Sequence record: NC_023610.1
Reading direction: 5' to 3' (one strand)
DNA: 64,000 nt
Position numbers and translations under genes: made by a program. The notes beneath the pieces were generated by a model. The model was not told where the DNA came from. It made no database searches and saw only the letters and a list, made by a program, of their open reading frames with translations. Below, piece by piece: positions 6,783 to 62,072 of this stretch. Each line of letters starts with the position of its first letter. The stretch's first letter is position 1.

Positions 6783-6789
6783 TTTCAAT

Positions 6790-6803
6790 ACTCCGTAGTT
6801 TTA
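6790..6803 (-). promoter_or_regulatory. Repeated gene-start motif TAAAACTACGGAG (copy 1 of 5)
   Basis: Copies at 6790, 8671, 9198, 11967 and 12363, each ending in an RBS just before a start codon. Confidence 0.7.
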
Positions 6804-6814
6804 GCAAATTAAGG

Positions 6815-8119: not shown

Positions 8120-8661
8120 TTTACTTCTCCTTCTACTGCAAAGCTTGGGTGAGTTAAGACGTAGAACTTACCGTGTACGCCCATTTTACCGCGAGCGACC
8201 GTAATACCGATGTGGTCCATGAGTCTTTCGGCTTCAAGGACAACGGCTTCAAAGAACAGGTTGAATTCCCAGCCGTCGAGGCGTTTGGTTTCCACGCACT
8301 CCACCAATGCTCGCATTCCCGCCAGGGTTTCTGTTTTCGCTGCATCCATGCGGTTCACTATTACCGCACCATTGATTTCGCTGAGTGTCTGAGTTTCCAG
8401 CTCACCCAGACTCGGGTAGACCATGAGGTTAATTTCCTCTTCGTCCATCTTCCGTTTACGCAACGCCGACCACGTTTGGAAATACGGGAGTTCCATCACC
8501 TTGGTCCGGCTGTCACGGCCACGGCGTAACTCCATGTAGAGAATATAGTGGGCGACCGAAGCGGGAGTGAAGCCACAGTAGAACCCTTCCAGTACTGCGC
8601 CAATGCGGCCAGTCATCAGGGTGTTGATGCGAATGTCTTTCGTGTCAGTGTTGGTGTTCAT
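8116..8661 (-). CDS. Hypothetical protein
   Basis: 181-aa ORF preceded by the AAAACTACGGAG motif; ATGA overlap with the next gene. Confidence 0.75.
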   Translation of the reverse strand: MNTNTDTKDIRINTLMTGRIGAVLEGFYCGFTPASVAHYILYMELRRGRDSRTKVMELPYFQTWSALRKRKMDEEEINLMVYPSLGELETQTLSEINGAVIVNRMDAAKTETLAGMRALVECVETKRLDGWEFNLFFEAVVLEAERLMDHIGITVARGKMGVHGKFYVLTHPSFAVEGEVK

Positions 8662-8670
8662 CTTAAAATA

Positions 8671-8685
8671 CTCCGTAGTTTTAAC
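8671..8685 (-). promoter_or_regulatory. GTTAAAACTACGGAG motif (copy 2)
   Basis: Exact 15-mer. Confidence 0.7.
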
Positions 8686-8692
8686 AGGTTAG

Positions 8693-9190: not shown

Positions 9191-9197
9191 ATCGAGC

Positions 9198-9213
9198 ACT
9201 CCGTAGTTTTAAC
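9198..9213 (-). promoter_or_regulatory. GTTAAAACTACGGAG motif (copy 3), directly after a terminator-like hairpin
   Basis: Exact 15-mer; GGGGC-TTCG-GTCCCC hairpin at 9216-9236. Confidence 0.7.
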
Positions 9214-9241
9214 AAGGGGACCGAAGCCCCCTTTTTTAAGG

Positions 9242-10127: not shown

Positions 10128-10746
10128 GTGTCAGTTTTTTGCGGACGTTGGCTTTAAAGTGCGAGCCGCAGGCCAGCGCTTGATAGTACAGTGCGGTGAA
10201 CGGAAATATCCGTCCGATAGGTTTCTGTTCTTGCACGCTCCCTTCTTTGAAGGTAAAGCGGTAAATCACGCCACCACAACGTTCGTCGTGACGTATTGCC
10301 GTGGCCACGTATAACCACGCTGCCAATACGCATTGGCTAATGTGGGTAACACGTTCTTTTGCATCACCCAAAATGATGGTGCTTTCCGGCGGGTACTCGA
10401 TAAGCGTCCCGTCTAATGATGCGACGTAAATCGGACCATCGGTGATAATCAACTGTTCGCCCTTCATCCCTTCTTCCAGAATCAGAAAGCGAGAGGTGTC
10501 GGCGTAGCTGAGGAATCCTGTCTCCTCTTTTGCAGCCATCAGTTGATAACGATAATCCCAGGCACGGGCCATGATGTTACTCCCGACGTAAGCCCAGAGT
10601 AAGACCTTATGACCATGAAAGGTAAAGGGGCCGTGAGGGTAACGGTACTTACGCCCACTGTCTTCAGTGTGCATCTTCCCGCCATGGGCTACAACAACGC
10701 GAGAGTCAACGGCCAATTCCCCGCGTGTATAAACCAGTATGCTCAT
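10120..10746 (-). CDS. Ntn-hydrolase / proteasome-beta (HslV-like) fold protein
   Basis: N-terminal MSILVYTRGELAVDSRVV matches the T-x-x-A-Y-x-G-x-L-A-A-D-S pattern; C-terminal AIRHDERCGGVIYRF. Confidence 0.55.
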   Translation of the reverse strand: MSILVYTRGELAVDSRVVVAHGGKMHTEDSGRKYRYPHGPFTFHGHKVLLWAYVGSNIMARAWDYRYQLMAAKEETGFLSYADTSRFLILEEGMKGEQLIITDGPIYVASLDGTLIEYPPESTIILGDAKERVTHISQCVLAAWLYVATAIRHDERCGGVIYRFTFKEGSVQEQKPIGRIFPFTALYYQALACGSHFKANVRKKLTLK

Positions 10747-10943
10747 TTTATTCGGCTCTCCAATAACTGCCGCATTAACTCAGCCTCCAGCCGAGCTGTT
10801 GCCAGTGTGTGCTCTGTGAGTTCTGCGCGTCGCACCGGCGATTGAGCCATCGCCTCCGCCATGTAGTGAACGAAGGACTTGACGGTTGAATCGACCTGCT
10901 GGCGTTTGTGCTCGGAACGGATTAAAGCGTCTAAGTCCTTCAT
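10743..10943 (-). CDS. Small helical hypothetical protein
   Basis: 66 aa; RBS AAGGA; ATGA overlap. Confidence 0.7.
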   Translation of the reverse strand: MKDLDALIRSEHKRQQVDSTVKSFVHYMAEAMAQSPVRRAELTEHTLATARLEAELMRQLLESRIK

Positions 10944-10953
10944 GTTGAATTCC

Positions 10954-11121
10954 TTATTCGCCTAAGCGATAAACGTCGTCACCGCCGAAGATACGACTGA
11001 AGTCTTCTTCGAAACGGGTGCGGTCCAGGGGTACGTCATCGAACTCGCCTGGCGCTGCTTTGTCGTAATCCCCGGTACCAGGGAGTGTACGTGGTGCTGG
11101 AACAGTTTCATTTCTTGCCAT
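10954..11121 (-). CDS. Small acidic hypothetical protein (55 aa, MARNETVPAP...RIFGGDDVYRLGE), absent from the ORF track
   Basis: RBS GAGG(A); fills the gap between neighbouring genes; host-like codon usage. Confidence 0.7.
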   Translation of the reverse strand: MARNETVPAPRTLPGTGDYDKAAPGEFDDVPLDRTRFEEDFSRIFGGDDVYRLGE

Positions 11122-11140
11122 TGTCAGGTTCCTCTATGGA

Positions 11141-11170
11141 ATAAAAAAGGTGGGGGCGGCACGCCCCCTG
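11141..11170 (-). terminator. Intrinsic terminator
   Basis: GGGGGC-GTGCC-GCCCCC followed by a T-run on the minus strand. Confidence 0.65.
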
Positions 11171-11210
11171 TCGGTAATGTCCCGACCAAACGAAGAGAAC
11201 TTTTTAGTGA

Positions 11211-11534
11211 TTAGTGTACGAGGCGAGTTTCGCCGTCAACAACGCGGTGAGAGTCACGGTCAGCTTCGGTCACGGCGATGTATTCGACCGTACCGGTGAA
11301 GCCCATCTGACGCCCGTAGGTGTCCTCGTAGAACTCGGTCAATTCACGAACATCGTTCGGTAGCGGACCGTCCACCTGGAAGAACTTCAGTTCCTGGTCC
11401 ATGGTGGTGACCATCAGGTACTTCTGACCGACGCGCAGGTTCTGACGGTCGGTTGGGTGCATGTTCAACGAGAACACCTGGTTATCGTCGTTGGACAGTT
11501 CGATGCGGTTGATGTAGTTACGAATGATTTGCAT
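11211..11534 (-). CDS. Hypothetical protein
   Basis: 107 aa; RBS AGGAG; strongly biased codons. Confidence 0.75.
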   Translation of the reverse strand: MQIIRNYINRIELSNDDNQVFSLNMHPTDRQNLRVGQKYLMVTTMDQELKFFQVDGPLPNDVRELTEFYEDTYGRQMGFTGTVEYIAVTEADRDSHRVVDGETRLVH

Positions 11535-11576
11535 GATAAAACTCCTGAAAGAATAGTTAGGATTGTAGAATGGGGA

Positions 11577-11957
11577 TTAGTTAACTTTACGGTAGACTGG
11601 CATCTTGCTCAGGGTGTCGGTGTGAACCTTGAACTCTTTGTCAATCCCTTTGTTCAGTTTATAGGCCAGGTAAGCACGCAGACGCAATGCATCACCCCAT
11701 GTGAACATCCACTCGGTGTCCCGTTTAAAGAACCACGAGTTAAAGCGACCGAACTGTGATTGCATCACGTAGATACGGTCGTACATCTTACCGGATAACT
11801 CTTCTTCCAGAATCTCCAGTAACTTCGCGGCTTCTTTCGGGTTCAAGGTAAGTTCCTTGACGCCCTTCAACGCACGGGTCTTTTCAAAGTCCGCTTGCTC
11901 TTTTGCCAACGCTTTCGTTTCATCAACCAGAATCAAACTCATTAATAAATTCAACAT
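11577..11957 (-). CDS. Hypothetical protein
   Basis: 126 aa; preceded by the AAAACTACGGAG motif. Confidence 0.75.
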   Translation of the reverse strand: MLNLLMSLILVDETKALAKEQADFEKTRALKGVKELTLNPKEAAKLLEILEEELSGKMYDRIYVMQSQFGRFNSWFFKRDTEWMFTWGDALRLRAYLAYKLNKGIDKEFKVHTDTLSKMPVYRKVN

Positions 11958-11966
11958 GTTCTTAAT

Positions 11967-11981
11967 CTCCGTAGTTTTAAC
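11967..11981 (-). promoter_or_regulatory. GTTAAAACTACGGAG motif (copy 4)
   Basis: Exact 15-mer. Confidence 0.7.
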
Positions 11982-11990
11982 AGGGGGTAC

Positions 11991-12353
11991 TTAGTGAATC
12001 TGCATCATGACTTCGGTGAGGGCAGGGGACGCCTTCCCAACGATGGTGTAGGTCCGCTCGGTGTCGAGCGCCATTGCTGCCACACATTCTTCTTTCAACT
12101 TTTCCGTGACGATAATGCGGCGTTGCTCATCCGTGAAGTGAATGAGGGAATGAGTAGTGGGGTCGAAGAAGTAGCTCCCCGCCACTTTACTGAGTGTGAA
12201 TTCAAAATCACACACGCCAACAGCAATGTATTCTTTAAAGGCGTGCTGCATGGCTTCTACCAACTTGTGGTTAATGCGCACTTCCACATCGCATTCATTA
12301 TCCACGACATTCAATTTACCCTGGGTGTGAATGTAAAAATGATACTGTTGCAT
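11991..12353 (-). CDS. Hypothetical protein (MQQYHFYIH...)
   Basis: ATG at 12353 follows GTTACAACTACGGAG (copy 5, one mismatch, 12363-12377). Confidence 0.7.
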   Translation of the reverse strand: MQQYHFYIHTQGKLNVVDNECDVEVRINHKLVEAMQHAFKEYIAVGVCDFEFTLSKVAGSYFFDPTTHSLIHFTDEQRRIIVTEKLKEECVAAMALDTERTYTIVGKASPALTEVMMQIH

Positions 12354-12415
12354 GAGGTTATTCTCCGTAGTTGTAACATTGGTATCTAGGGGTTTAGTAC
12401 CCTTATTCACCGAGA

Positions 12416-12428
12416 GAATATATACTTC
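12416..12428 (-). promoter_or_regulatory. Putative phage-RNAP promoter (TATATT-core variant)
   Basis: GAAGTATATATTC resembles the TATATTAC core described for phiKZ early promoters. Confidence 0.4.
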
Positions 12429-12457
12429 AAAATCCTTTAGATAGGGAATAAAGAAAG

Positions 12458-12590
12458 AATCTCCCCTCCAGCCAAAAGACGTAAAGTCTCTTGACTAAAG
12501 GGGTGCGAGCCTAATAGCAGGAAGATGCTGAACGGGAGACTTTACAACCGTTCTCATCCACTCGCATAAAGAGTGGACCGGCTGTAAAAA
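12458..12590. ncRNA. Candidate structured non-coding RNA / cis-regulatory RNA
   Basis: Several perfect complementarities in ~130 nt: GTAAAGTCTC/GAGACTTTAC, TCCACTC/GAGTGGA, CAGCC/GGCTG, CCCCT/AGGGG, GAACGG/CCGTTC, TGCGAG/CTCGCA. Confidence 0.4.
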
Positions 12591-12596
12591 ATGAGT

Positions 12597-13664
12597 TTAA
12601 GCAATGGCGGCGTAAGGGTACATCTGCTTCGCCAGGGATTTCAGACTGGTGGTCGCAGTGAAATGACCGGAGACAGTGAGCATCCGATTGTACAACGTAT
12701 CGGTAATCATCAGCTTCTTCACGTCGTTTGACGCGCCATTGAACACAGAGAGGTTGCGGGGATTGGTGGCTTTGAAAGACAGGCGGTCCCAGTTCGCATT
12801 GAAGCGGGTGAGAATCGCCACCAGTTCGTTCTTGTAGTTGCTGTAGTCAGCGGCCAGTGCCCCTACCGGTAAACGGTAGTAGCTGATGATGTCGGTCACA
12901 GCCGTCGGGTAACGTTGCAGAACGAAGTCGACTCCGAGGTGGTCGAGCATACTGTTGAGGATGGTGACGTCGCCGTTCTGTACTGCGAAATCGAACTGGT
13001 CGATTAACGCCGTTTTCATTACCACGTCATTCGGGTTGGTGCTCATCACCCGGTCAATGATGTTGGTCATCCCCAGCCGCGCGGCATTGGTCAGGATACT
13101 GACACGCATCGCGTAATCCGAGGCACTGTCTTTGATGCGCCCGAATTCTTCGCCTGGCAAATCCAGCAAACGGTTACTGGTTTCAATCAGGTTGTTGATT
13201 TCGGGGACAGTGGCACCCAAGGCAACCTTGAGAAAACTGTTTCCGTTCTGCACCTGGTCGAAGGGAAGTTTGTTCAGGTTATTCAGCTGACCCTGTATCT
13301 GACTTTGCAGGTCGCTGGACATCCCTTTGACGGTCCCGATGGTCCCATCCAGTGCCGAGTTCAACTGGGTGGTCAGGGCGGTGACGTCTTCCCGTACTTC
13401 TTTCGCCGTAGCCAATGCATCGTTCAGGGAACCGAGGTCCCCAATCTTCGTGTTGAAGAGGAAGTTCTTGGCGGCGGCTATCTTGTTCTGGATGGTGTTC
13501 GACATCCCGGTGAGGGTGTCTTTCGCTGTCTTCCCGTAACCATCGACGGTCATTAACGCGTCTTTGGCTTTGGTGGTCATCAGCGTACTGCCTGCCTGCA
13601 CCGACTTCGTGGCACTGCTGGCTGCCGTTTTGGCGTCGCTCAATTTGCTGGTAATGTCTACCAT
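12597..13664 (-). CDS. Putative virion structural protein
   Basis: 355 aa; Ala/Thr/Ser-rich helical N-terminus; RBS GAGG; resembles conserved phiKZ-like virion proteins. Confidence 0.55.
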   Translation of the reverse strand: MVDITSKLSDAKTAASSATKSVQAGSTLMTTKAKDALMTVDGYGKTAKDTLTGMSNTIQNKIAAAKNFLFNTKIGDLGSLNDALATAKEVREDVTALTTQLNSALDGTIGTVKGMSSDLQSQIQGQLNNLNKLPFDQVQNGNSFLKVALGATVPEINNLIETSNRLLDLPGEEFGRIKDSASDYAMRVSILTNAARLGMTNIIDRVMSTNPNDVVMKTALIDQFDFAVQNGDVTILNSMLDHLGVDFVLQRYPTAVTDIISYYRLPVGALAADYSNYKNELVAILTRFNANWDRLSFKATNPRNLSVFNGASNDVKKLMITDTLYNRMLTVSGHFTATTSLKSLAKQMYPYAAIA

Positions 13665-13682
13665 GGTAGCGTCCTCGATGAG

Positions 13683-13712
13683 ACAAAAAAAGAACCGGGG
13701 TTTCCCCCGGTC
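13683..13712 (-). terminator. Intrinsic terminator
   Basis: GACCGGGGG-AAA-CCCCGGTTC followed by a T-run. Confidence 0.75.
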
Positions 13713-13717
13713 GTAAA

Positions 13718-14509
13718 CTATTCTTCTCCTTCTACCGCCACCAGTGCGTTACCGGCTACCTGAATGTGGTGAGAAGTCGAGCGGCCGCCAGAGTATTCCA
13801 GGCGCACCTTAAAATAGATTTGTTTTGGGTTCAGTACTTTGAGCCCTTTAGTGAACACTTTGATAGACATGTCCGGGTTACTCAACCCACGGGTTAAGTT
13901 ACTGCGCTCCGAACTCCGCTTACCACCGTTCACGACTGAAGACTTCACCCCACTGTCCGCTACCGTTGTTTCGACGAAACCGTTCAGTGGGTTATTGAGA
14001 TACGCCGACATCAGCTTACGCCATTGCTCGTCATTAATCTCCAAGGTGTTCTTAATGTTACGGAACATGGTCGCCAGGAAGTTTTGGCGGTCCGGGTATT
14101 TCTCGTTATGGAAAGGTAGGTACAGCATTTCTTCGTCAATGTTGACGCTGGTCGATACGGTTACCTCGTTGTCGAATTCCAGGTCCATCTTCAGTGTCAC
14201 CTTGAGCGGTGCCAATAAGCGTAGACCTTTCATGAAGTTTTTGAACGTCAGTCCCGGGTTGGTTAACCCACGGTTAAGGTTGCTGCGTTCCGAAGAACGT
14301 CCACGACTGGTTTGCAGCACCTCGTTCCGGGGGTCTTTCAAATACTGATTCATCAGCATTGACCACCGATGGGAGGAGATGTTCAGGTCACCTTTTATCT
14401 GGCGGAACATCAAAGCCAAGATGTTCATGCCACTAATGTTCTCCTCTTCTGGCTCGTTGAGTAGAGCGCCGAGTGCGAAGCGAAGTGGTAGACTACTCCT
14501 CATGTGCAT
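13718..14509 (-). CDS. Conserved jumbo-phage protein with an internally duplicated domain
   Basis: Two ~120-aa repeats, each containing RSSERSNL.RGL.NP......F.KGL..L.P. Confidence 0.75.
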   Translation of the reverse strand: MHMRSSLPLRFALGALLNEPEEENISGMNILALMFRQIKGDLNISSHRWSMLMNQYLKDPRNEVLQTSRGRSSERSNLNRGLTNPGLTFKNFMKGLRLLAPLKVTLKMDLEFDNEVTVSTSVNIDEEMLYLPFHNEKYPDRQNFLATMFRNIKNTLEINDEQWRKLMSAYLNNPLNGFVETTVADSGVKSSVVNGGKRSSERSNLTRGLSNPDMSIKVFTKGLKVLNPKQIYFKVRLEYSGGRSTSHHIQVAGNALVAVEGEE

Positions 14510-14516
14510 ACCTTAT

Positions 14517-15038
14517 TTACGTAGAGTGAGCCCTCCGCAGAATACTCTCGCAGAAGGTCATAATGTCACAATACACGTAATACATCTCACCGATACGGTA
14601 ATTGTACACGTGCTCCGCCTCAGTCTCCCGGGAGAGGTCCATCGCTTCCACATTGTCCTTGATAAGTTCCTCAAGTTCCAGTAAGAAGGAGATGGCTTCC
14701 AGGTGGCTCCCTTGTTTATCGCTCAGCCAAAAGCGTAGGGAACTCGAATTGATTTCTGGCGGGTAGTGAGTGCGCGGCGGTTCTTCCGTGCGGGCGAAAT
14801 ACAACGTGCCTTTTTCTAAACGCTCGGCCACGTCGTGTGCCTGGTAATAGAAGTCGCCTTGAATCGGGAGCAGTAGTAGCAACTCTTCCTCAGAGAGACG
14901 GAGTGCTCTTAACCCTTTCCATAGGATAAGCATGGTTTCCGGACTGACCTCTATCTCCCCGTCGATACCACCCAGTAGGGCGTACGCCTTGTTCAACTGA
15001 CGGGATTGAAAGTAACGCCGTAACATTTTTGCTAACAT
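14517..15038 (-). CDS. Hypothetical protein
   Basis: 173-aa ORF; RBS AGGAG. Confidence 0.75.
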   Translation of the reverse strand: MLAKMLRRYFQSRQLNKAYALLGGIDGEIEVSPETMLILWKGLRALRLSEEELLLLLPIQGDFYYQAHDVAERLEKGTLYFARTEEPPRTHYPPEINSSSLRFWLSDKQGSHLEAISFLLELEELIKDNVEAMDLSRETEAEHVYNYRIGEMYYVYCDIMTFCESILRRAHST

Positions 15039-15079
15039 TCTGTGTAACTCCTGTGATACAAGTAGCTGAAGTCAATTCT

Positions 15080-15092
15080 ATAATATAGACCT
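15080..15092 (-). promoter_or_regulatory. Putative promoter GGTCTATATTAT
   Basis: Matches the TCTATATTAC motif also seen at 28220 and 27363. Confidence 0.5.
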
Positions 15093-15117
15093 GTTCCGTT
15101 TTTAGGAGGACCTAGCC

Positions 15118-15666
15118 GTGAGCGCTATTGAGTTTGTTGAACCCGAAGACTTGGCGAAGAAGGCTGGGGCTTTACCGCAAGTCGTTGACCAGAATGAACT
15201 ACCGGAGACTGAACCGGCCGGACAGTCCGAAGAAGACCGTGTGGATGACGACCGCCTTGAGTTTACCCAGAATGTCCGTGAGCAAATTGTTACCGGACTG
15301 ATGCCAACAGGGAAAGCCCCGACCGACCTGAAAGAGATTGACCGTTTGCTGGCCACCCTTGATGGCATTGACCGTGCTGTCCACACCAAACGTCGTACTA
15401 AGCAGGCGGATAAGCAAGTCCAGAATGACACCATGATTGCGAAGATTCTGGAGAAAGCCCAGCTGGAATTGGAACGTAAGCAGTTGACGGGTTCCAACTC
15501 CGCACCGACCCGTGCGGCCAATGCACTTGACCCAAGCTTCCTGTCCCAACCGGTAACGCTGGAAGGGGAGTTCAAAGAACAGGTGGAACAAGAAACCTCC
15601 GCCGACTTCTTCGAACGTATGGAGAACGACCACCCCGAATTGCGTCGCGGGGAGAAAGAAGAATAG
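15118..15666 (+). CDS. Acidic hypothetical protein
   Basis: GTG start with strong RBS AGGAGG; 182 aa. Confidence 0.8.
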   Translation: MSAIEFVEPEDLAKKAGALPQVVDQNELPETEPAGQSEEDRVDDDRLEFTQNVREQIVTGLMPTGKAPTDLKEIDRLLATLDGIDRAVHTKRRTKQADKQVQNDTMIAKILEKAQLELERKQLTGSNSAPTRAANALDPSFLSQPVTLEGEFKEQVEQETSADFFERMENDHPELRRGEKEE

Positions 15667-31817: not shown

Positions 31818-33638
31818 TTACACGCGGGAGATTAGCGTAGAGCCTTGTTTGGTGATGGTGATTTCACCGCTCATGCTCCAGTTGGTTCCACGACCGGTAT
31901 CGTTGTAGACCTTGATGTAGTTCCAGCGACCAACCCCAACAGCTGGCAGGTTGAATGGACCCACGTTCACGGTACCGGAGTTACGTCCGTTGTTACCGGT
32001 ATCTTTGTACATCACCTGCGCATCACCAATACCGTCACCGCCACTGTAGACGTAGAAGTATTGACGTTCACCGGAACCGCAGTACACGTTCAGACCAGAA
32101 AGCGTACGCGCGAAGTTTGCACCCGGAATACGGTAGATGGCCGTTGGTGTACGGATAGCTCCGCCCTGAGACCAACCAGGGAGCGTCTGGTTACCCGTCT
32201 GCCCCTCTGCTTCGTTCATCATGCGCGTCACCAGCAGTGAACCACCACGTGGTGTCAGGTAACGGTCAGAAGCCGTACCTGCTTGCGCTTCCGCATCGTT
32301 AGCCGTCAGGAAGTTATTGACGTTACCCAACCCAACCTGAGCTTTCGTCACGTTGTGTGGGTTGTCCTGACGGTTGGCGTGGGCGTTAATCAGTGGCACT
32401 GCCAGCACGTTAATCGCTTGTGCAGTACGCAGCGGTGTCATGTACGTGGCATTGTCCGCCCCGACTTGTGCCTGCGACTGACTGGCAATCCCGTAGTTCT
32501 GCACTGCACCCAAACCAACTTGTGCCGCCGTCACGCCGTGTGGGTTAGAGCGGTTGTTGATGTGGGCGTTCAACGGAATCAACGCCTGTTTCGAAACAGC
32601 CTGGGCTGTACGAAGAGGCGTCATGTACAGGACGTTACTGGTTCCGTTCTCAGCATCAAGCTGGGTGGCAATCCCGTAGTTCTCAACGGAGCCTAACCCG
32701 ACTTGCGCTTTGGTTGTCGCATGGGGGTTGTTCTTATCGTTGATGTGGGCTTGAATCACCGGGGTGATGTTGAGCGCGGTGTACTTGGCGATTTCCTGCC
32801 AGGTAGTCAGTGGCGTCATGTACAACGTAGACGAGGTGCCCGCTTCCGCTTCCGCCTGAGTAGCAGGACGGTAGTTTTCCACAATCCCTAAGCCAACCTG
32901 CGCCTTGGTGGTATTGTGGGGGTTGTTCTTGTCTGCGATGTGGGCGTTGAGGTTCGCTTCCACTTGCGCCAGGTGTTGCTCAATAGCCAGGCAACGAGCA
33001 TCCAGGCGATTGACGTTGGCGTACAGGTCAGCATCCACTGCATCGAGCCGTGCCACTTCATCCAACATCTGCTGACGAACACGGTTGATGTATTCGTAGA
33101 TAACGTTGTGCGAAGCGACGTCACCCTGAATCACCGCCCGCGTCAACTCTTCCAGCGCCAGCACCACGTACTCCAGGGAGTACAGGTCAGTGGCAGCATG
33201 TAAGTGCTTGCTCGGGTTGAAGGTCAGCGGTTTACCCCAGATGTTACCCCAGGAGACCACACGGTCGTCCTGCATCAAATCGTTCATCATTTTCACGATG
33301 GCGTCGATGCTGTAGGAGTAAGGTCCGCCCACAACCTGATACGTCAGCAACACGGTATCGTAGTCGCGGTTCACCAGGTTCAGGATGTTGTACACCGGTA
33401 AACCCAGGTTCTGGGTGGCTTCAACGTACGGGTAAATCAGGGTGTAGTCGGTACCGAGGTCGAGTTTCTTCCCACTGGCTTTGTCAGTAACGACCATGGA
33501 GTCGCCGTAGAACGGACCACCAAAGGGCTGAAACGCTCGGTTAAACTGTTTATCGACGGTGCGCTCTTCACCGATTACTCGGTTAGCCGCACTCTGCCCC
33601 GTTCTGTCCAACGGGTACTTGGGTTTGGTTAAGGCCAT
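31818..33638 (-). CDS. Tail fibre protein (phiKZ gp146-like) with NPH-x-x-T-x-AQVGL repeats
   Basis: MALTKPKYPLDRTG start; at least 4 repeats of ~55 aa (H...NPH.VTKAQVGLG.VENY..AT...A..G....YMTPL.T). Confidence 0.8.
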   Translation of the reverse strand: MALTKPKYPLDRTGQSAANRVIGEERTVDKQFNRAFQPFGGPFYGDSMVVTDKASGKKLDLGTDYTLIYPYVEATQNLGLPVYNILNLVNRDYDTVLLTYQVVGGPYSYSIDAIVKMMNDLMQDDRVVSWGNIWGKPLTFNPSKHLHAATDLYSLEYVVLALEELTRAVIQGDVASHNVIYEYINRVRQQMLDEVARLDAVDADLYANVNRLDARCLAIEQHLAQVEANLNAHIADKNNPHNTTKAQVGLGIVENYRPATQAEAEAGTSSTLYMTPLTTWQEIAKYTALNITPVIQAHINDKNNPHATTKAQVGLGSVENYGIATQLDAENGTSNVLYMTPLRTAQAVSKQALIPLNAHINNRSNPHGVTAAQVGLGAVQNYGIASQSQAQVGADNATYMTPLRTAQAINVLAVPLINAHANRQDNPHNVTKAQVGLGNVNNFLTANDAEAQAGTASDRYLTPRGGSLLVTRMMNEAEGQTGNQTLPGWSQGGAIRTPTAIYRIPGANFARTLSGLNVYCGSGERQYFYVYSGGDGIGDAQVMYKDTGNNGRNSGTVNVGPFNLPAVGVGRWNYIKVYNDTGRGTNWSMSGEITITKQGSTLISRV

Positions 33639-38132: not shown

Positions 38133-40709
38133 CTACGCGGTGGTACCATCGTCGTACTTGATATCACCGTTGACGGTCAGGTCGCGGTCGACTGTACCGG
38201 TCAGCGCCAGAGATACGCCGTAACCATTGCTGGTCGCTTTGATTTCCGTGCTGTCTGCGATACCGAAGGTCGGCGACGCCATCAGCATCACACGCTCAGT
38301 GCTCAGTGCCATGAAGACTTCGTTCGTGTACTCGTTAAAGTAGAAACGGGATTTACGAAGCGGGCCCTCGAAGCCTGCCACATTGGTCCAAGCACCTTTG
38401 GCGTAACTGTAGGTCTTCGCCCCAACAACGTCAGTGAAGACGAAGTTCAGGCTCGGCCAGTTATCCGGTTTGAAGGTGACATCAGCCAGGTCAGTGGTTG
38501 GGGTCAGTAAGCCAGCACCGAAGACGTATGCCAGGTCAGTCAACGTCAGACCCGTTTCGGTCAGGATGTTGGTCAACGGATACGTTGCGGTGAAGATTTG
38601 CGTAGTCCCGTTCTTCAGGATAATCTGAAGGTTAACGCCACGGGTGATTTTCGCGCTGTAGGTCAGGGTTGCTCCTGCGGCGGCACTTAACGCAGTTTCT
38701 GCTTTCGCATCCACCAACGTCCCTTGGCTGTCCAGGTACACTTCCGTCACGCCGGTGGTACGAATACGCGCCGCCATGAAGTTGTCTTCCATGTTACCGG
38801 ACCCGGTATCCACCTGGTAGTACACTAACGGTAAGTACACCGCAATGCCCGCACGCATGGTGAATGTCCCGGTAAAGGTCAGGACGGACGGTAAGACGTC
38901 GTACTCGTTGTCCGTGAACTGCCACGCCAGGGTTGGGGTACCGGTGTTGTTCCCTTTGGTCACGAGACCCAAACGAGACGCAGTCCAGTCGCCTTCCACA
39001 GTGGAGTCAGCCAGCAGGCCTTCAAACGGGGCACGGGTGATGATGTCGTTCACCCAACCGGTGTTCGCCGTCAAGTGATAACCATCAACCAACAGCGTAT
39101 CCAGCAAAGCACCCGCCGTTGATGGAATCATGTACTTGTCTGGCGCACCATTCAGTACATCCGTTTCCGACGCTGCCGCGTAGTTCTGTACCTGACCCAA
39201 CCCAATCGAGTCTTTGGTTACAGGTTCAGCACCCGCTGCAATCATGTCGTGCACGGGACCGTTCAGGAAGATACGCAGGTCAGCCGCAGAGACGTATTTG
39301 TCGTCTGCTGTCATCGCCAGAATATCAGCGTCTTCTGCCATACCGTAGTTCTGAACATTGCCGAGGCCGACCTGTGCTTTGGTCGTGTTATGCGGGTTGT
39401 TGTAATCCGCGATGTGCGCAGCAATACCATCGCTACCGGTGGCTTTCAGAATCTGGTTCACCAGGTAAGCGGTCATCAGCTTATCGGTGGCCGTCCCTGC
39501 AATGGCTTCCTGTAGCGTTGCCACCCCGTAGTTTGGCACGTTACCTAAACCTACCTGGTCTTTGGTGACCTGGTGCGGGTTACTGAAGTCCAACAAGTGT
39601 GCGGAGAGACCCTGACCCGAACCGTTGGAGATAGCTTGCGCTACCAGGTACGGAGACATAAAGGTGGTGGTACTGGTTCCCGAAATCGCTTCGGCCAATG
39701 TCGCCATCGCATAGTTCGGTACGCTACCCAGACCCACTTGCGCCTTCGTGACGTTATGCGGGTTGTTGGTGTTCCCGGTGTGCGACGCCAGCGCCAACGG
39801 AGCCAATACGTCAATGGCCGCTTTAGTCAGTGCAGGTGTCATGAAGCGGTTGGTTGCTACACCCGCTTGTGCCTCCACAACGGTCGCCGTCTGGTAGTTG
39901 TCAACTGACCCTAAACCAACCTGGGCTTTCGTTGTACCGTGCGGGTTGTCCGTCCGATTCGCGTGCGCATTAATCATCGGAACAATGAACTTGTTAGTGA
40001 AGTCCATCACACGCAATGACGTCATGTACTTGACGTTGTCAGTACCGGTCTCGGCTTCTTCTTTACTGGCCGGAACCAGGTTACCCAGGTCATCAATGCC
40101 CAAGTCAGCCAAGGTAATGTGGTGCGGGTTGGCGTGGTCAGCAATGTGCTCAAGGAGAGCCTGAAGCGCTTTGTTGTACCCGGCTTCCTGTGCGTCAATC
40201 AAGTCATACAGGCGAGCCACCACTTCATTCATCCCGACCATGTCGTCCACATTGTGACGATGCGGTACCGGTGGTAACTCATCCGGGATGTCCACTACCG
40301 CAGCCCAGGTCACGGTGCGCGGGTCAAGCTGTTTGTTGGCCAGCAGCGTCGTAATCTGGTTGATATCCAGAACGAACTCGCCACCCAGCGTCTGATAATC
40401 AATTTCGACTATCAGGTTTGCCTGCGGGTCGTTCATGACGATAGCACCGTAAATAGGTTGCATCGCCCCCGACAGAATCATCTGGTCAAAACGGAAACCG
40501 AAGTAATAGTCGTACCCTGGACGTAACGGCAACTGGGTTGCGGCATTCCGTAGCACGAAACCACGTCGGTGAAACGGTCCCTTGGTAGGGATAAAGAAGT
40601 TCGTCTGACCGTTGCCCACAGGCGTAATGGTATGACGCTCCTTAGTAATCTTGTTGTTCGTATTCGTCCCGTATGGGTCAAACTCGAACTCGTACGCTTT
40701 CGTTACCAT
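38133..40709 (-). CDS. Tail fibre protein (phiKZ gp145-like) with NPH repeats
   Basis: MVTKAYEFEFDPYG start (RBS GAGG); about 5 NPH..TKAQVGL repeats. Confidence 0.8.
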   Translation of the reverse strand: MVTKAYEFEFDPYGTNTNNKITKERHTITPVGNGQTNFFIPTKGPFHRRGFVLRNAATQLPLRPGYDYYFGFRFDQMILSGAMQPIYGAIVMNDPQANLIVEIDYQTLGGEFVLDINQITTLLANKQLDPRTVTWAAVVDIPDELPPVPHRHNVDDMVGMNEVVARLYDLIDAQEAGYNKALQALLEHIADHANPHHITLADLGIDDLGNLVPASKEEAETGTDNVKYMTSLRVMDFTNKFIVPMINAHANRTDNPHGTTKAQVGLGSVDNYQTATVVEAQAGVATNRFMTPALTKAAIDVLAPLALASHTGNTNNPHNVTKAQVGLGSVPNYAMATLAEAISGTSTTTFMSPYLVAQAISNGSGQGLSAHLLDFSNPHQVTKDQVGLGNVPNYGVATLQEAIAGTATDKLMTAYLVNQILKATGSDGIAAHIADYNNPHNTTKAQVGLGNVQNYGMAEDADILAMTADDKYVSAADLRIFLNGPVHDMIAAGAEPVTKDSIGLGQVQNYAAASETDVLNGAPDKYMIPSTAGALLDTLLVDGYHLTANTGWVNDIITRAPFEGLLADSTVEGDWTASRLGLVTKGNNTGTPTLAWQFTDNEYDVLPSVLTFTGTFTMRAGIAVYLPLVYYQVDTGSGNMEDNFMAARIRTTGVTEVYLDSQGTLVDAKAETALSAAAGATLTYSAKITRGVNLQIILKNGTTQIFTATYPLTNILTETGLTLTDLAYVFGAGLLTPTTDLADVTFKPDNWPSLNFVFTDVVGAKTYSYAKGAWTNVAGFEGPLRKSRFYFNEYTNEVFMALSTERVMLMASPTFGIADSTEIKATSNGYGVSLALTGTVDRDLTVNGDIKYDDGTTA

Positions 40710-40785
40710 GGAAAAAGTTCCTCGAGGTTTATTCACCCGGCCGGATGGGTAGACATAGAATTTAACCGTTTTCAGGAGTTAGCTC

Positions 40786-42039
40786 ATGCTACGTGTGATT
40801 TCCGCCCAAGTTATAGCCGCCGGGACATCTGGCGGGTGGCAAACCGCCAACTTGGCGGACGTGCCGATGTTTCAATCGTTTAAGCGCTACTCGGCCGCTA
40901 TCGTACGGGTGTACGACACCGTAGCCGATACCAACGGCTACCTCGACCTTTATTCTCTCCCGGTGGTGACCCGCAGTTCAGCCATGACCCTGAAGGCCTA
41001 CCTGGAGATTGCGGTAGGGTTAATCGTCTTAACCGACAGTCCCGTTACCCGCTCAACGACTCCCCGTGTGGCGTCCTATTACGCCGGGGCATACGGCTAC
41101 GCACTGAAAGGGTTCAACAACAACTTCCACCCGGATACCGAATTGCTTCCGGACCAGAAGATTGACTTGTTGGTCTACCATAATGATATCAGTGATTATC
41201 GACGCCTCCAGGCGAATGCGCTCTTTGCAGTCAACGGGTTGTTCCACAAGTCTGACTACACCGAAGACGGTATCGTGTTGTTTGACGGTGGCCGTACAGT
41301 CACCAAAGGGAACGACAACCGAGTAACGGTACTGGACTTCTCGTCATTGGGTGGGGTAACGCTGCTACCGATTACCAACGAGATGATTCGTTCCACCAAG
41401 GACACCATCGGTCTTGAAGACAGCCTGTACATTGACCTCCCGGAAACGCTGGAAGGGAAAACCCTGTTCGTGGTTATCGGCGGGATGCTGTATCCCCTGA
41501 ACTCATCATTCGACATGGTGAGCTCCACTCGGGTCCGGTTGACTCTGAAACACTACGACCTGGTTGAGTGGTTCATCGACAACTATACCCTGATGGATTT
41601 ATCGGCACTGCCAATGACCATGGACGTTAATGACCCGGCCAAGTTCGTGGAAGGGGAGTTCCACACCGATGCGTTTGTGCGTGCTGTACTGACCATGAGC
41701 CAAACGTTCTTTGTGGTTATCCCGACGACGGGTATCACCGTGGAGAAGGTTCGCCTTGGTGAGACTGACCAACCGGGTTTATACCGTGCACCTAACGACG
41801 CTGACCCCGACGTCCCGGTGATGATTGGCAACGGGTATGTGGTGGCGTACAACGTCAGTTACCAATGGGGGTTCAATGCCCTGGCGGTACCGAACAACCA
41901 GATGTTCAACCGCATCTGGAAAACAACAACCAAGGAAGACAACCTCGGTACGAACTACCAACTGTTGCGTGACCAGAACGAGACTAACCGTCCGCTCAAA
42001 CGTCCCGCAGCGCATTTGCTCTACATCAGCAAACCGTAA
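40786..42039 (+). CDS. Virion structural protein
   Basis: 417 aa; RBS AGGAG; conserved LFAVNGLFH motif of phiKZ-like virion proteins. Confidence 0.6.
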   Translation: MLRVISAQVIAAGTSGGWQTANLADVPMFQSFKRYSAAIVRVYDTVADTNGYLDLYSLPVVTRSSAMTLKAYLEIAVGLIVLTDSPVTRSTTPRVASYYAGAYGYALKGFNNNFHPDTELLPDQKIDLLVYHNDISDYRRLQANALFAVNGLFHKSDYTEDGIVLFDGGRTVTKGNDNRVTVLDFSSLGGVTLLPITNEMIRSTKDTIGLEDSLYIDLPETLEGKTLFVVIGGMLYPLNSSFDMVSSTRVRLTLKHYDLVEWFIDNYTLMDLSALPMTMDVNDPAKFVEGEFHTDAFVRAVLTMSQTFFVVIPTTGITVEKVRLGETDQPGLYRAPNDADPDVPVMIGNGYVVAYNVSYQWGFNALAVPNNQMFNRIWKTTTKEDNLGTNYQLLRDQNETNRPLKRPAAHLLYISKP

Positions 42040-55538: not shown

Positions 55539-55539
55539 C

Positions 55540-55588
55540 GAAAAAAAAAGAAAGGCAACGCCACCGGGTTTCCCCGGTGGCGTTTATG
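55540..55588. terminator. Bidirectional terminator
   Basis: AACGCCACCGGG-TTT-CCCCGGTGGCGTT with an A-run upstream. Confidence 0.8.
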
Positions 55589-55592
55589 CCGC

Positions 55593-55772
55593 TTAGTGAT
55601 AACGGAAGATGCGATGCGCAATCAACGTTACAACCAAGGGCACAACCGTAATAAGGACAAACAGCCACAGGACGTTTGCCCGCTCAGGAGGAATGGAAAC
55701 CATAATCAACGCACAGATAATCCATGCACCGAACCCACTCCCCATAACGTAGCTAAACGCGCGCGGGGACAT
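55593..55772 (-). CDS. Small two-TM membrane protein (59 aa), absent from the ORF track
   Basis: TGATG overlap with the upstream stop; MSPRAFSYVMGSGFGAWIICALIMVSIPPERANVLWLFVLITVVPLVVTLIAHRIFRYH. Confidence 0.65.
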   Translation of the reverse strand: MSPRAFSYVMGSGFGAWIICALIMVSIPPERANVLWLFVLITVVPLVVTLIAHRIFRYH

Positions 55773-56398
55773 CAGCTGTACGCCACGTCACGCCAGAAGC
55801 GAGAGAACTGAAGGTTCTCCAGCACATCCACGTTCTGCTCGCGCAGTGCGGTTTCAGCGATTTCCAGAATCCCACGACCGTCATCGGGTTCATCCGTTAA
55901 CAGTTCGGTGAGTTCTTTTTCGTTACGGGCGAAGAGCGTGTACGCAACCTGGGTCAGTAGCGAGGAGTGGTCGTCCTCACGTGACGGAGATTTGTACTGG
56001 TTAGCGTCTTTGACGTACAGGTTATCCTGTTCCAGGACGGCGACTTCAATCCCGAAAGAGCTGTCACGCCAGGCATCGAAACACTGACGAACTACGCCCA
56101 GTACCGCTTGGGGATTCTGTTGATAGAAACGTTTGAAGGCCAGGTAACGCGGGGAGTCAAAGAAACTGTTAGCGCGGGCCTGTGCCATCAAATCGGGAAC
56201 GGACGTGTTACCGAAGATAGTGGCAACGATTGGGTTCACTTCAGACATAGCGGGTTCCTTCTCAGGTTTAGGTAAGAATGCGGGTTCAGGACGAGGTGCG
56301 GTAACTTCCTCAGCCGTGGCGATGCGATAGGGTACGACGTTACTGATTTTTGACGTGTCGATTTTACCCTGAGAAGATTTGTTATTTTTTCTACTCAT
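55772..56398 (-). CDS. Hypothetical protein (MSRKNNK...)
   Basis: ATG follows the 17-mer RBS motif. Confidence 0.75.
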   Translation of the reverse strand: MSRKNNKSSQGKIDTSKISNVVPYRIATAEEVTAPRPEPAFLPKPEKEPAMSEVNPIVATIFGNTSVPDLMAQARANSFFDSPRYLAFKRFYQQNPQAVLGVVRQCFDAWRDSSFGIEVAVLEQDNLYVKDANQYKSPSREDDHSSLLTQVAYTLFARNEKELTELLTDEPDDGRGILEIAETALREQNVDVLENLQFSRFWRDVAYS

Positions 56399-56402
56399 GG
56401 TG

Positions 56403-56419
56403 GACAACCCCTTATTTAA
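56403..56419 (-). promoter_or_regulatory. TTAAATAAGGGGTTGTC motif (copy 2)
   Basis: Exact 17-mer. Confidence 0.65.
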
Positions 56420-56801
56420 AATCAAACGTGATGATGTAACTTGGGATAAAGACATCACTCCCAGGCTTCAATCGTTTTTGCTCAGAGAAGGCAAAGCCGT
56501 AGCCCGCTTCTTTAAGCTTTTCCATCAGGTAGTACAAGCAGCAGGTGTTGATGTTCCTGTTGCGCAGCACTATCCCGTCGAAACGTTGACCCTGATTGAA
56601 TTTACGTTCGTGCTCTACAATACCGTTGAAGATGGCAGGATATTCATTCATCAGTTTGTAGGCTGTGCGTCCCTTAAGTACGTACTCATTAACGCGGTTG
56701 ACAAACTCCTGTTCAGCTTGCACGATACGCAGGTTAGTCACCCCTGGCAATTTACCCATAGGGTCATCAATCAGGGAGAGTAATACCGGCTGTTTTGACA
56801 T
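56412..56801 (-). CDS. Conserved hypothetical protein (MSKQPVL...)
   Basis: RBS GGAGAG. Confidence 0.7.
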   Translation of the reverse strand: MSKQPVLLSLIDDPMGKLPGVTNLRIVQAEQEFVNRVNEYVLKGRTAYKLMNEYPAIFNGIVEHERKFNQGQRFDGIVLRNRNINTCCLYYLMEKLKEAGYGFAFSEQKRLKPGSDVFIPSYIITFDFK

Positions 56802-61756: not shown

Positions 61757-61759
61757 AAT

Positions 61760-61834
61760 TTATCGCCCTGCGGGATAAACGCCGTTTGTTCCAAATCGCT
61801 GATGAGCAGAAGTTCCTAAAGTTCTGTCTAACAT
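61760..61834 (-). CDS. Possible 24-aa leader peptide (MLDRTLGTSAHQRFGTNGVYPAGR)
   Basis: Purine-rich GGAACGGGG before the ATG; stop 3 nt upstream of the next start. Confidence 0.3.
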   Translation of the reverse strand: MLDRTLGTSAHQRFGTNGVYPAGR

Positions 61835-61865
61835 CCCCGTTCCATTAACGGAATCGTTCAAGTAG

Positions 61866-61876
61866 GTAATATATTC
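61866..61876 (-). promoter_or_regulatory. Putative promoter GAATATATTAC
   Basis: TATATTAC core just downstream of the capsid terminator. Confidence 0.55.
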
Positions 61877-61900
61877 TTGAAAGTTCTTTACATCGACCGA

Positions 61901-61950
61901 AAACAAAAAAAGAAAATAAAGCCCGGGAGCCCCGAAGGGCTCCCGGTGCT
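61901..61950 (-). terminator. Strong intrinsic terminator of the capsid gene
   Basis: CCGGGAGCC-CTTCGG-GGCTCCCGG-GC followed by TTTATTTTCTTTTTTTG. Confidence 0.9.
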
Positions 61951-62012
61951 TCAACTACGGCACTCTACACTGTCGCCGGAGGGTCTCGCCAACCAACCCT
62001 CGATGGGGCGTA

Positions 62013-62072
62013 TCACGGTTTAGTGAAACCGTTCAACTGTGGGTTGACGATAGCCTGGCTGAGTGGAGTTCA
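62013..62072 (-). other. In-frame post-stop extension of the capsid gene (candidate UGA read-through segment)
   Basis: TGA-ACT CCA CTC AGC CAG GCT ATC GTC AAC CCA CAG TTG AAC GGT TTC ACT AAA CCG-TGA = *TPLSQAIVNPQLNGFTKP*. Confidence 0.65.

Follow-up and report, generated by a model that had tools for sequence, protein, structure and literature searches.

In nucleus-forming phages, the nuclear shell separates transcription from ribosomes. Regulatory RNAs made in this setting, with its unusual phage polymerases and transcription apart from ribosomes, are almost unexplored in jumbo phages except in phiKZ. In phiKZ, abundant RNAs of 71 nt and 141 nt, which come from promoters with terminators close behind, have been confirmed by northern blotting (Putzeys et al. 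2024, PMC10914365). The same work describes the 5'-UTR-residing terminators T102 and T131 and 17 ncRNA candidates (PMC10914365). Two kinds of phiKZ promoters are relevant here. The non-virion RNA polymerase requires TATG, with the G as +1, which is the form of its late promoters; its middle promoters have a weak AT-rich element centered near -24, and the sigma-like subunit of this polymerase contacts -17 to -24. In phiKZ-like phages, the virion polymerase uses early promoters with a conserved AT-rich element and a start 6 nt downstream.

The gp165/gp164 gap and its surroundings

The window analyzed here is a stretch of 64,000 nucleotides of Erwinia phage PhiEaH1 (NC_023610, genus Iapetusvirus, 218 kb), and a window position is the NC_023610 record position minus 124000. 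The annotation of NC_023610 includes a nuclear shell protein, the tubulin PhuZ, and several split RNA polymerase beta-type subunits, which places PhiEaH1 among the phiKZ-like nucleus-forming jumbo phages. The element occupies part of a gap of 243 nt (12354-12596) that is flanked by minus-strand genes, gp165 upstream and gp164 downstream, and the gene strand does not switch at this gap. The gp165 gene (12597-13664) encodes a virion-associated protein of 355 aa, recognized by its open reading frame and a match to phrog_6532; the homolog in Serratia phage Moabite is annotated as "virion-associated protein," with a match to phiKZ gp164. The gp165 stop codon is 2 nt ahead of the promoter-like box at 12594-12584 that is described below. 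The gp164 gene (11991-12353, minus strand) encodes 120 aa and is preceded by a leader with a ribosome-binding motif (12354-12378). The start given in the record for gp164, 12410, probably lies too far upstream, since the form annotated in the near-identical phage Ea277G is the one with 120 aa.

Between the element and gp164 there is an early-promoter-like motif (12391-12429, minus strand) with the core TATATTCT at 12422-12415 and a predicted start near 12408. Its consensus, TATATTAC-N5-(G/T)TGA, has about 13 sites genome-wide, mostly intergenic and on the sense strand. Since it matches the early-promoter pattern of phiKZ-like phages, gp164 appears to have its own putative early-type promoter, downstream of the terminator-type hairpin B described below. 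A 40-nt extended version of the motif has three copies in the genome, namely, the one at 12391-12429 of the window and those at record positions 41726-41764 and 84835-84916. The contigs of two metagenomic relatives (L017 and L021) and the circular record of Ea277G (OP991903) break inside the gap, at this 40-nt motif. These assembly and record ends are explained by the three-copy repeat, and we therefore rejected a genome terminus or origin in the gap.

Other signals in the neighborhood were also recorded. The leader of gp164 belongs to a conserved type, TGTTA(A/C)AACTACGGAG, which ends in a ribosome-binding site and stands directly 5' of several small genes in the gp152-gp164 block (minus-strand copies at 6787-6811, 8659-8691, 9195-9219, 11955-11982, and 12351-12378). 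A canonical terminator hairpin with a U7 run is located at 13693-13712 (minus strand) between gp166 and gp165, about 30 nt before the gp165 start. Thus, gp165 has terminators or terminator-type elements on both sides, and its transcription needs read-through or a promoter within the end of gp166. Upstream of gp167, with which the gp167-gp165 group begins, there is an early-type motif, TCTATATTAT-N5-TGAC, at 15064-15084 (minus strand); it makes the timing of this virion-protein group ambiguous. Elsewhere in the window, diverged tandem repeats with a period of 183 nt and 60 to 73% identity occur at 32284-32945 and 39182-39968, inside two large minus-strand genes (31818-33638 and 38133-40736). 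Their sequence suggests a repeated 61-aa domain common to the two large proteins.

The initial annotation took the gp165/gp164 gap for the longest gene-free one, which is incorrect, as the gap at 61757-62069 has 313 nt. This longer gap holds a canonical terminator followed by an early-type motif (AATATATTAC...TTGAAC). Another gap, at 55539-55771 (233 nt), is structured to the same degree as the gp165/gp164 gap. It follows the gene at 55772-56458 on the minus strand, folds at -94.6 kcal/mol (z = -5.05), and contains a pair of long, irregular hairpins with a canonical terminator behind them; with GC correction, it comes 1st among the 133-nt windows of the whole stretch.

A conserved RNA structure on the minus strand

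An unannotated structured non-coding RNA at 12458-12590 had been proposed from a set of inverted pairings, and these are present as placed: GTAAAGTCTC (12481-90) with GAGACTTTAC (12536-45), TCCACTC (12557-63) with GAGTGGA (12571-77), CAGCC (12469-73) with GGCTG (12580-84), CCCCT (12463-67) with AGGGG (12499-503), GAACGG (12530-35) with CCGTTC (12548-53), and TGCGAG (12504-09) with CTCGCA (12561-66). The folding is better than that of shuffled controls, with z = -4.5 against dinucleotide shuffles for both the 243-nt gap (minus strand) and the 133-nt span 12458-12590 (plus strand), and none of the 200 shuffles was as good. Structure z scores across the region range from -4.5 to -5.6, and the 133-nt span ranks 2nd among 3,193 sliding windows of the 64-kb window after GC correction.

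The strand had been left open and is now fixed. The folding energy of the 133-nt span is -57.9 kcal/mol for the minus strand and -46.0 kcal/mol for the plus strand. This advantage of 12 kcal/mol is due to six G-U pairs of the minus-strand fold, of which hairpin A has two and hairpin B four; on the plus strand, they become A-C mismatches. In relatives, substitutions interconvert G-U and Watson-Crick pairs at such positions. The one-strand G-U pairs, together with this switching, show that the element is an RNA on the minus strand, read in the same direction as the flanking genes.

To collect relatives, one large protein search with gp165 was made; it returned matches at 88, 88, 76, 74, 71, 54, 52, and 51% identity, whose contigs were retrieved. 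A scan of metagenome contigs with gp165 gave no relatives. The five metagenomic relatives with gp165 identities of 71 to 88% keep a gap of 234 to 248 nt and an alignable element, and all six-sequence comparisons below are between PhiEaH1 and these five (L017, L018, L020, L021, and L022). A covariance model built from four of the sequences recovers the other two (E about 1e-10 to 1e-12); searched against the 218-kb genome and all other loci, it matches only at the homologous gap and finds no further copies. In more distant kin, PCH45, SPLA10, Moabite, and FBKp24, with gp165 homologs of 31 to 36% identity, a compact hairpin stands directly 3' of the homologous gene.

Ea277G, one IMG/VR contig, and the Logan runs X1 and X5-X8 are 100% identical to PhiEaH1 over 12383-12643 and thus give no co-variation information. 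The contigs of X5, X6, and X8 come from a phage that is 98.3% identical to PhiEaH1, with 86 differences in 5 kb (10500-15500), none of which falls inside 12383-12643. The four runs labeled metatranscriptomic, with X5, X6, and X8 among them, were the only RNA runs in which the sequence was found; we considered them as evidence of expression and rejected them, as their contigs of 26 to 175 kb, from the 98.3% relative, are genome DNA. A search for a transcriptome of PhiEaH1 found none. In X5, X6, and X8, this looks like phage genome DNA inside an RNA library.

The best-conserved and dominant part of the element is hairpin B (12463-12503, minus strand), a long stem of 18 bp, including 4 G-U pairs, with the loop UUUAC. 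The stem has 19, 19, 19, 21, and 22 bp in the relatives, with energies of -28 to -32 kcal/mol over all six sequences, and its arms are quite different in sequence in L020 and L022. Compensatory changes support the helix: over the whole structure, 17 pairs are changed on both sides versus 7.3 in shuffles (none of 500 reaches 17) and 0 to 7 in slid controls, and hairpin B alone has 8 double-changed pairs with 88% of cells paired, although these counts come from a model-fitted alignment that leans towards structure and are therefore generous. Behind the stem follows a U-rich tail (12447-12462), CUUUCUUUAUU, which is invariant but for one base in L021. It has 10 U in 16 nt, starts 3 nt past the stem, and is broken by C and A. 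Ordinary PhiEaH1 terminators have stems of 7 to 13 bp, tetraloops, and an uninterrupted U7-9 run right at the stem, and in a terminator scan, hairpin B had the longest stem among the terminator-like matches in 40 kb. By position and form, hairpin B is a terminator-type element of an atypical kind, and termination at this site is predicted on that basis. The initial annotation had stated that the element is not a simple terminator; this holds for the unusual length of the stem but not for the type of hairpin, since 12503-12463 with its U-rich tail is of the terminator type.

Upstream of hairpin B, a loop box, GUAAAGUCUC (12536-12545, minus strand), carries the complement of the hairpin B loop plus the adjoining upper 5' arm (12481-12490), so that a pseudoknot or kissing interaction could form. 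The GUCU core of the box is invariant. In all six sequences, the longest upstream Watson-Crick match to the arm plus loop falls on the box, with lengths of 10, 10, 8, 7, 8, and 8 bp, which shuffled upstream sequence reached in 0, 3, 51, 201, 54, and 45 of 2,000 trials, respectively; for PhiEaH1, a perfect 10-nt complement to the hairpin arm was found in none of the 2,000 upstream shuffles. The pairings of each box with its own apex beat the cross pairings, as only 2 of the 720 permutations are equal, the second being a swap of two identical rows. Three lineages carry different complementary versions: in L018 and L021, both partners have a matching deletion of 1 nt, and in L020 and L022, the pairing is extended towards the stem. 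With few lineages, this co-variation amounts to about two independent events. These comparisons indicate that the crossing pairing is a real feature, so the term "pseudoknot-capable" in the initial annotation was well chosen. We rejected the idea that the 10-mer is a repeated genomic motif, as it occurs only in these two places in the window. No targets of the loop box were found among phage translation start regions, where the best duplex had -18.5 kcal/mol and was equaled by 40% of shuffled boxes.

The RNA predicted from G12565 to the end of the tail has about 119 nt and folds at -50.6 kcal/mol (z = -5.6), and its minimum-energy fold is also the centroid. Its putative 5' domain (12504-12565, minus strand) consists of three helices: P1 (12565-12560 with 12510-12505), which is the TGCGAG/CTCGCA pairing; P1b (12559-12555 with 12527-12523), which shows one compensatory double change; and P2 (12553-12548 with 12535-12530), which is the GAACGG/CCGTTC pairing and has the loop box in its apical loop. 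This architecture is common to PhiEaH1, L017, L018, and L021; L020 has an analogous long hairpin, L022 differs, and both fit the domain poorly. The RNAalifold covariation term for the 5' domain is about zero, and the support comes mostly from four fairly close sequences.

Part of the same sequence can form hairpin A (12541-12588, minus strand), an alternative fold that would occur only in gp165 read-through transcripts. It covers the spacer of the promoter-like motif plus the predicted first transcribed bases. The lower stem of hairpin A is 72% paired, its changes are uncompensated, and it is missing from the minimum-energy fold of L018. In L018 and L021, one U is replaced by C; in P1, this substitution converts a U-G pair to C-G, and in hairpin A it creates an A-C mismatch. 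Because of this change, the double change in P1b, and the poor pairing of hairpin A, the 5'-domain fold is modestly favored over hairpin A by the sequence comparison. Both folds around TGCGAG are real as mutually exclusive alternatives, and "possible switch" is a fair description of them. The pairings TCCACTC/GAGTGGA and CAGCC/GGCTG do exist in the DNA; as RNA helices they stand less well, as they overlap the promoter-like DNA motif and show no compensation in relatives.

A promoter-like motif upstream of the element

At the upstream end of the gap there is a bipartite promoter-like motif. It consists of an AT-rich box, TCATTTTTTAC (12584-12594, minus strand), and, 15 nt past the box, TATG (12565-12568, minus strand), whose G12565 is the putative transcription start; the box then covers -29 to -19. 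The box is invariant in the six close sequences and is also found in the relatives with 54% and 51% gp165 identity, and TATG is invariant in all eight, while the sequence of the spacer varies. The spacing is 15 nt in the six close sequences; in the 54% and 51% relatives, where nothing else in the gap can be aligned, it is 14 nt. In the 54% relative, an ORF of 34 aa with a plausible ribosome-binding site lies between the gp165 homolog and the conserved box (L023:3088-3192), and here, too, the stop codon is immediately next to the box.

The PhiEaH1 genome, of which 94% is coding and 6% intergenic, contains 16 copies of the box when one mismatch is allowed; 12 of these are intergenic, and 14 are minus-strand copies. 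At N15 or N16, 8 or 9 of the 16 boxes have TATG, GATG, or AATG. The exact sequence TTTTAC-N15-TATG occurs four times in the genome, three times in intergenic DNA and on the sense strand. Apart from the copy in the gp165/gp164 gap, three or four intergenic, sense-strand sites have box-N15-TATG, which is present at record positions 3751, 81630, and 24152 (the last with N16); full motif sites number only about six genome-wide. The intergenic DNA of PhiEaH1 shows no enrichment of the 4-mer TATG by itself. Elsewhere in the genome, the box is often placed after stop codons. One motif site precedes the nuclear shell protein gene, in a gap between divergent genes that contains no gene end; the motif therefore cannot simply be a 3'-end signal.

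The motif shares several features with phiKZ non-virion promoters. Both have TATG, which is invariant in the PhiEaH1 relatives, both have an AT-rich element (at -29 to -19 in PhiEaH1, centered on -24), and in both the first transcribed bases (predicted ones in PhiEaH1) are conserved; like phiKZ, the PhiEaH1 genome codes for split beta-type RNA polymerase subunits. The PhiEaH1 box differs in being a strongly conserved 11-mer at a fixed spacing rather than a weak bias, and some PhiEaH1 sites carry GATG or AATG. From this analogy, we infer that box-N15-TATG is a putative promoter of the phiKZ non-virion polymerase type. No host sigma-70 promoter was found in the gap.

A second unit with the same layout was observed between gp005 and gp004 (L027:1024-1182; record NC_023610 3623-3781, minus strand). 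There, box-N15-TATG starts 7 nt past the gp005 stop codon; next come about 115 nt of structured, non-coding DNA and then, just ahead of gp004 (phosphatase), an ordinary terminator. It has no sequence likeness to the gp165/gp164 element beyond the first 8 nt and is possibly a second small RNA.

Interpretation and comparison with described systems

The initial annotation listed a small RNA, a ribozyme, and a conformational switch as possible identities. Nothing indicates a ribozyme, and the small RNA is now the leading reading. We interpret the locus as a conserved minus-strand RNA unit of about 119 nt, from a phage-type promoter to hairpin B, and we hold this view with belief and doubt in about equal parts, as the promoter, the ends, termination, and function are predictions. 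The putative non-virion-type promoter TCATTTTTTAC-15 nt-TATG, just past the gp165 stop codon, would start the RNA at G12565. The RNA would have a 5' hairpin domain (P1, P1b, and P2) displaying the box GUAAAGUCUC, followed by the 18-bp hairpin B and the U-rich tail. Hairpin B would end the short RNA plus any read-through from gp165 and would insulate the downstream gp164 block, which has the early-type promoter of its own. Pairing of the loop box with the hairpin B apex may modulate the formation of B and so make termination conditional; alternatively, the box may be held in reserve as a seed for a target in trans. We regard as speculative, and rather unlikely, the fuller version of this idea, a self-contained, ribosome-independent switch in which the box-apex kissing helix sets the leak of middle or late transcription past B into a block of early genes or frees the seed of a trans-acting sRNA. 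If it were true, the kissing-helix switch or seed sRNA would define a new family of RNAs, found only in nucleus-forming phages of the PhiEaH1 type, and the gp005/gp004 unit would be a second, unrelated unit built likewise.

The main rival reading is a plain 3'-UTR of the gp165 mRNA, in which tandem hairpins A and B serve as a terminator plus 3'-end protection, and box-N15-TATG either acts at the RNA level as a motif or serves some other purpose. When the whole gap is folded, the minimum-energy structure is indeed hairpin A followed by hairpin B, the element starts 2 to 8 nt past the stop codon, the distant kin PCH45, SPLA10, Moabite, and FBKp24 have their hairpin directly 3' of the gene, many of the other boxes in the genome stand behind stop codons, and phage ncRNAs derived from 3'-UTRs are known, e.g., in PAK_P3. 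However, the lower stem of hairpin A, with its 72% pairing, uncompensated changes, and loss in the L018 fold, does not behave like a maintained helix, and an invariant bipartite sequence with fixed spacing and a variable spacer is the signature of a protein site and not of a helix. The motif copy upstream of the nuclear shell protein gene, with no gene end in that divergent gap, argues in the same direction, and we consider the 3'-UTR possible but on balance improbable. An attenuator would put the emphasis on anti-termination, with the box competing for the 5' arm of hairpin B and hairpin A or P2 deciding the access to the box; read-through into gp164 and the genes beyond would be set in this way, with any short RNA arising as a by-product. 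The upper 5' arm of B pairs better with the box than with the 3' arm of B (Watson-Crick pairs versus G-U pairs and a bulge), a nascent RNA cut at the B loop folds into the box-arm helix in PhiEaH1 and L022, box and arm co-vary, and conditional termination in 5' UTRs has been reported for phiKZ. Yet the competition concerns only the top 5 bp and the loop, leaving free the 13-bp GC-closed base next to the tail, no sensor was identified, and gp164 has its early-type promoter downstream of hairpin B. Coupling to ribosomes is unlikely in a phage that codes for a nuclear shell and PhuZ, and for this reason we also judged ribosome-coupled attenuation at the gp165 stop codon unlikely. Altogether, an attenuator seems a good deal less than probable, and we give it little weight.

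An element acting at the DNA level, such as a replication origin, a packaging site, or a cluster of protein-binding palindromes, would account for the dense inverted repeats and for the Ea277G record and two metagenomic contigs that end in the gap. We find it hardly credible: the contig ends coincide with the three-copy 40-nt motif, the Ea277G record is circular, the helices rely on one-strand G-U pairs that switch between G-U and Watson-Crick in relatives, and the gap is not a place where gene strand switches. Membership in a described RNA family (a ribozyme, a riboswitch, or a tRNA-like structure), or a small protein gene starting at a conserved ATG, would fit the compact fold and the invariant ATG at 12567-12565, respectively. 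Against a described family, an Rfam scan at gathering thresholds of the window and five related loci was empty; a permissive scan of the gap gave only RAGATH-8 at 9.9 bits versus a cutoff of 86.7 bits. ARAGORN found no tRNA or tmRNA. The ORF from the conserved ATG has 18 aa in PhiEaH1 and 4 aa in L021, is long in L017 and L018, is shifted in frame by indels, and has no Shine-Dalgarno sequence. It was rejected because frame and length vary among relatives, and it is the only ATG ORF in the 119 nt. Both the described family and the small gene are therefore very improbable. A frameshift site, UUUUUUA plus structure, was rejected too, as the heptamer lies past the stop codon in every relative and no ORF runs across it.

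Compared with intrinsic terminators, hairpin B is alike in being a stem-loop closed by four or five G-C pairs, in having a U-rich tail containing UUUAUU (the phiKZ terminator motif has TTAT after the stem), and in standing at the end of a transcription unit with a hairpin at the same place in relatives. It differs in a stem about twice as long with 3 to 5 G-U pairs, in a U-run that is interrupted and displaced by 3 nt, and in the invariance of the tail sequence, which suggests more than a generic U-tract. With terminator/anti-terminator switches and kissing regulators, such as plasmid antisense RNAs, the element shares an upstream segment complementary to the 5' arm and loop of a terminator, the presentation of this segment in an apical loop, and the co-variation of the two segments. 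In contrast to these systems, the competition is limited to the terminator apex, and the element has no known ligand, leader peptide, or partner RNA.

The closest parallel is with the short RNAs of phiKZ. In both cases, a nucleus-forming jumbo phage with its own RNA polymerases has, in intergenic DNA upstream of a gene, a promoter (predicted here), a structured stretch of less than 250 nt, and a terminator, with no ORF that carries a ribosome-binding site and with a sequence conserved within the genus. The two are different in that they have no sequence or Rfam kinship, the phiKZ RNAs are confirmed by northern blotting while the PhiEaH1 RNA is predicted from sequence, the PhiEaH1 terminator stem of 18 to 22 bp is not of the compact GC-rich type, and complementarity of a loop to the terminator apex is undescribed for the phiKZ RNAs. 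The element provides a defined candidate in an Erwinia amylovora phage, with precise coordinates, strand, and phylogenetic support, and the two candidate promoter consensus motifs, of the early type and the box-N15-TATG type, would aid the annotation of transcription units in relatives. It is not a new kind of system: the element is real and unannotated, but it belongs with the short, terminator-bounded RNAs that are known from phiKZ-like phages.
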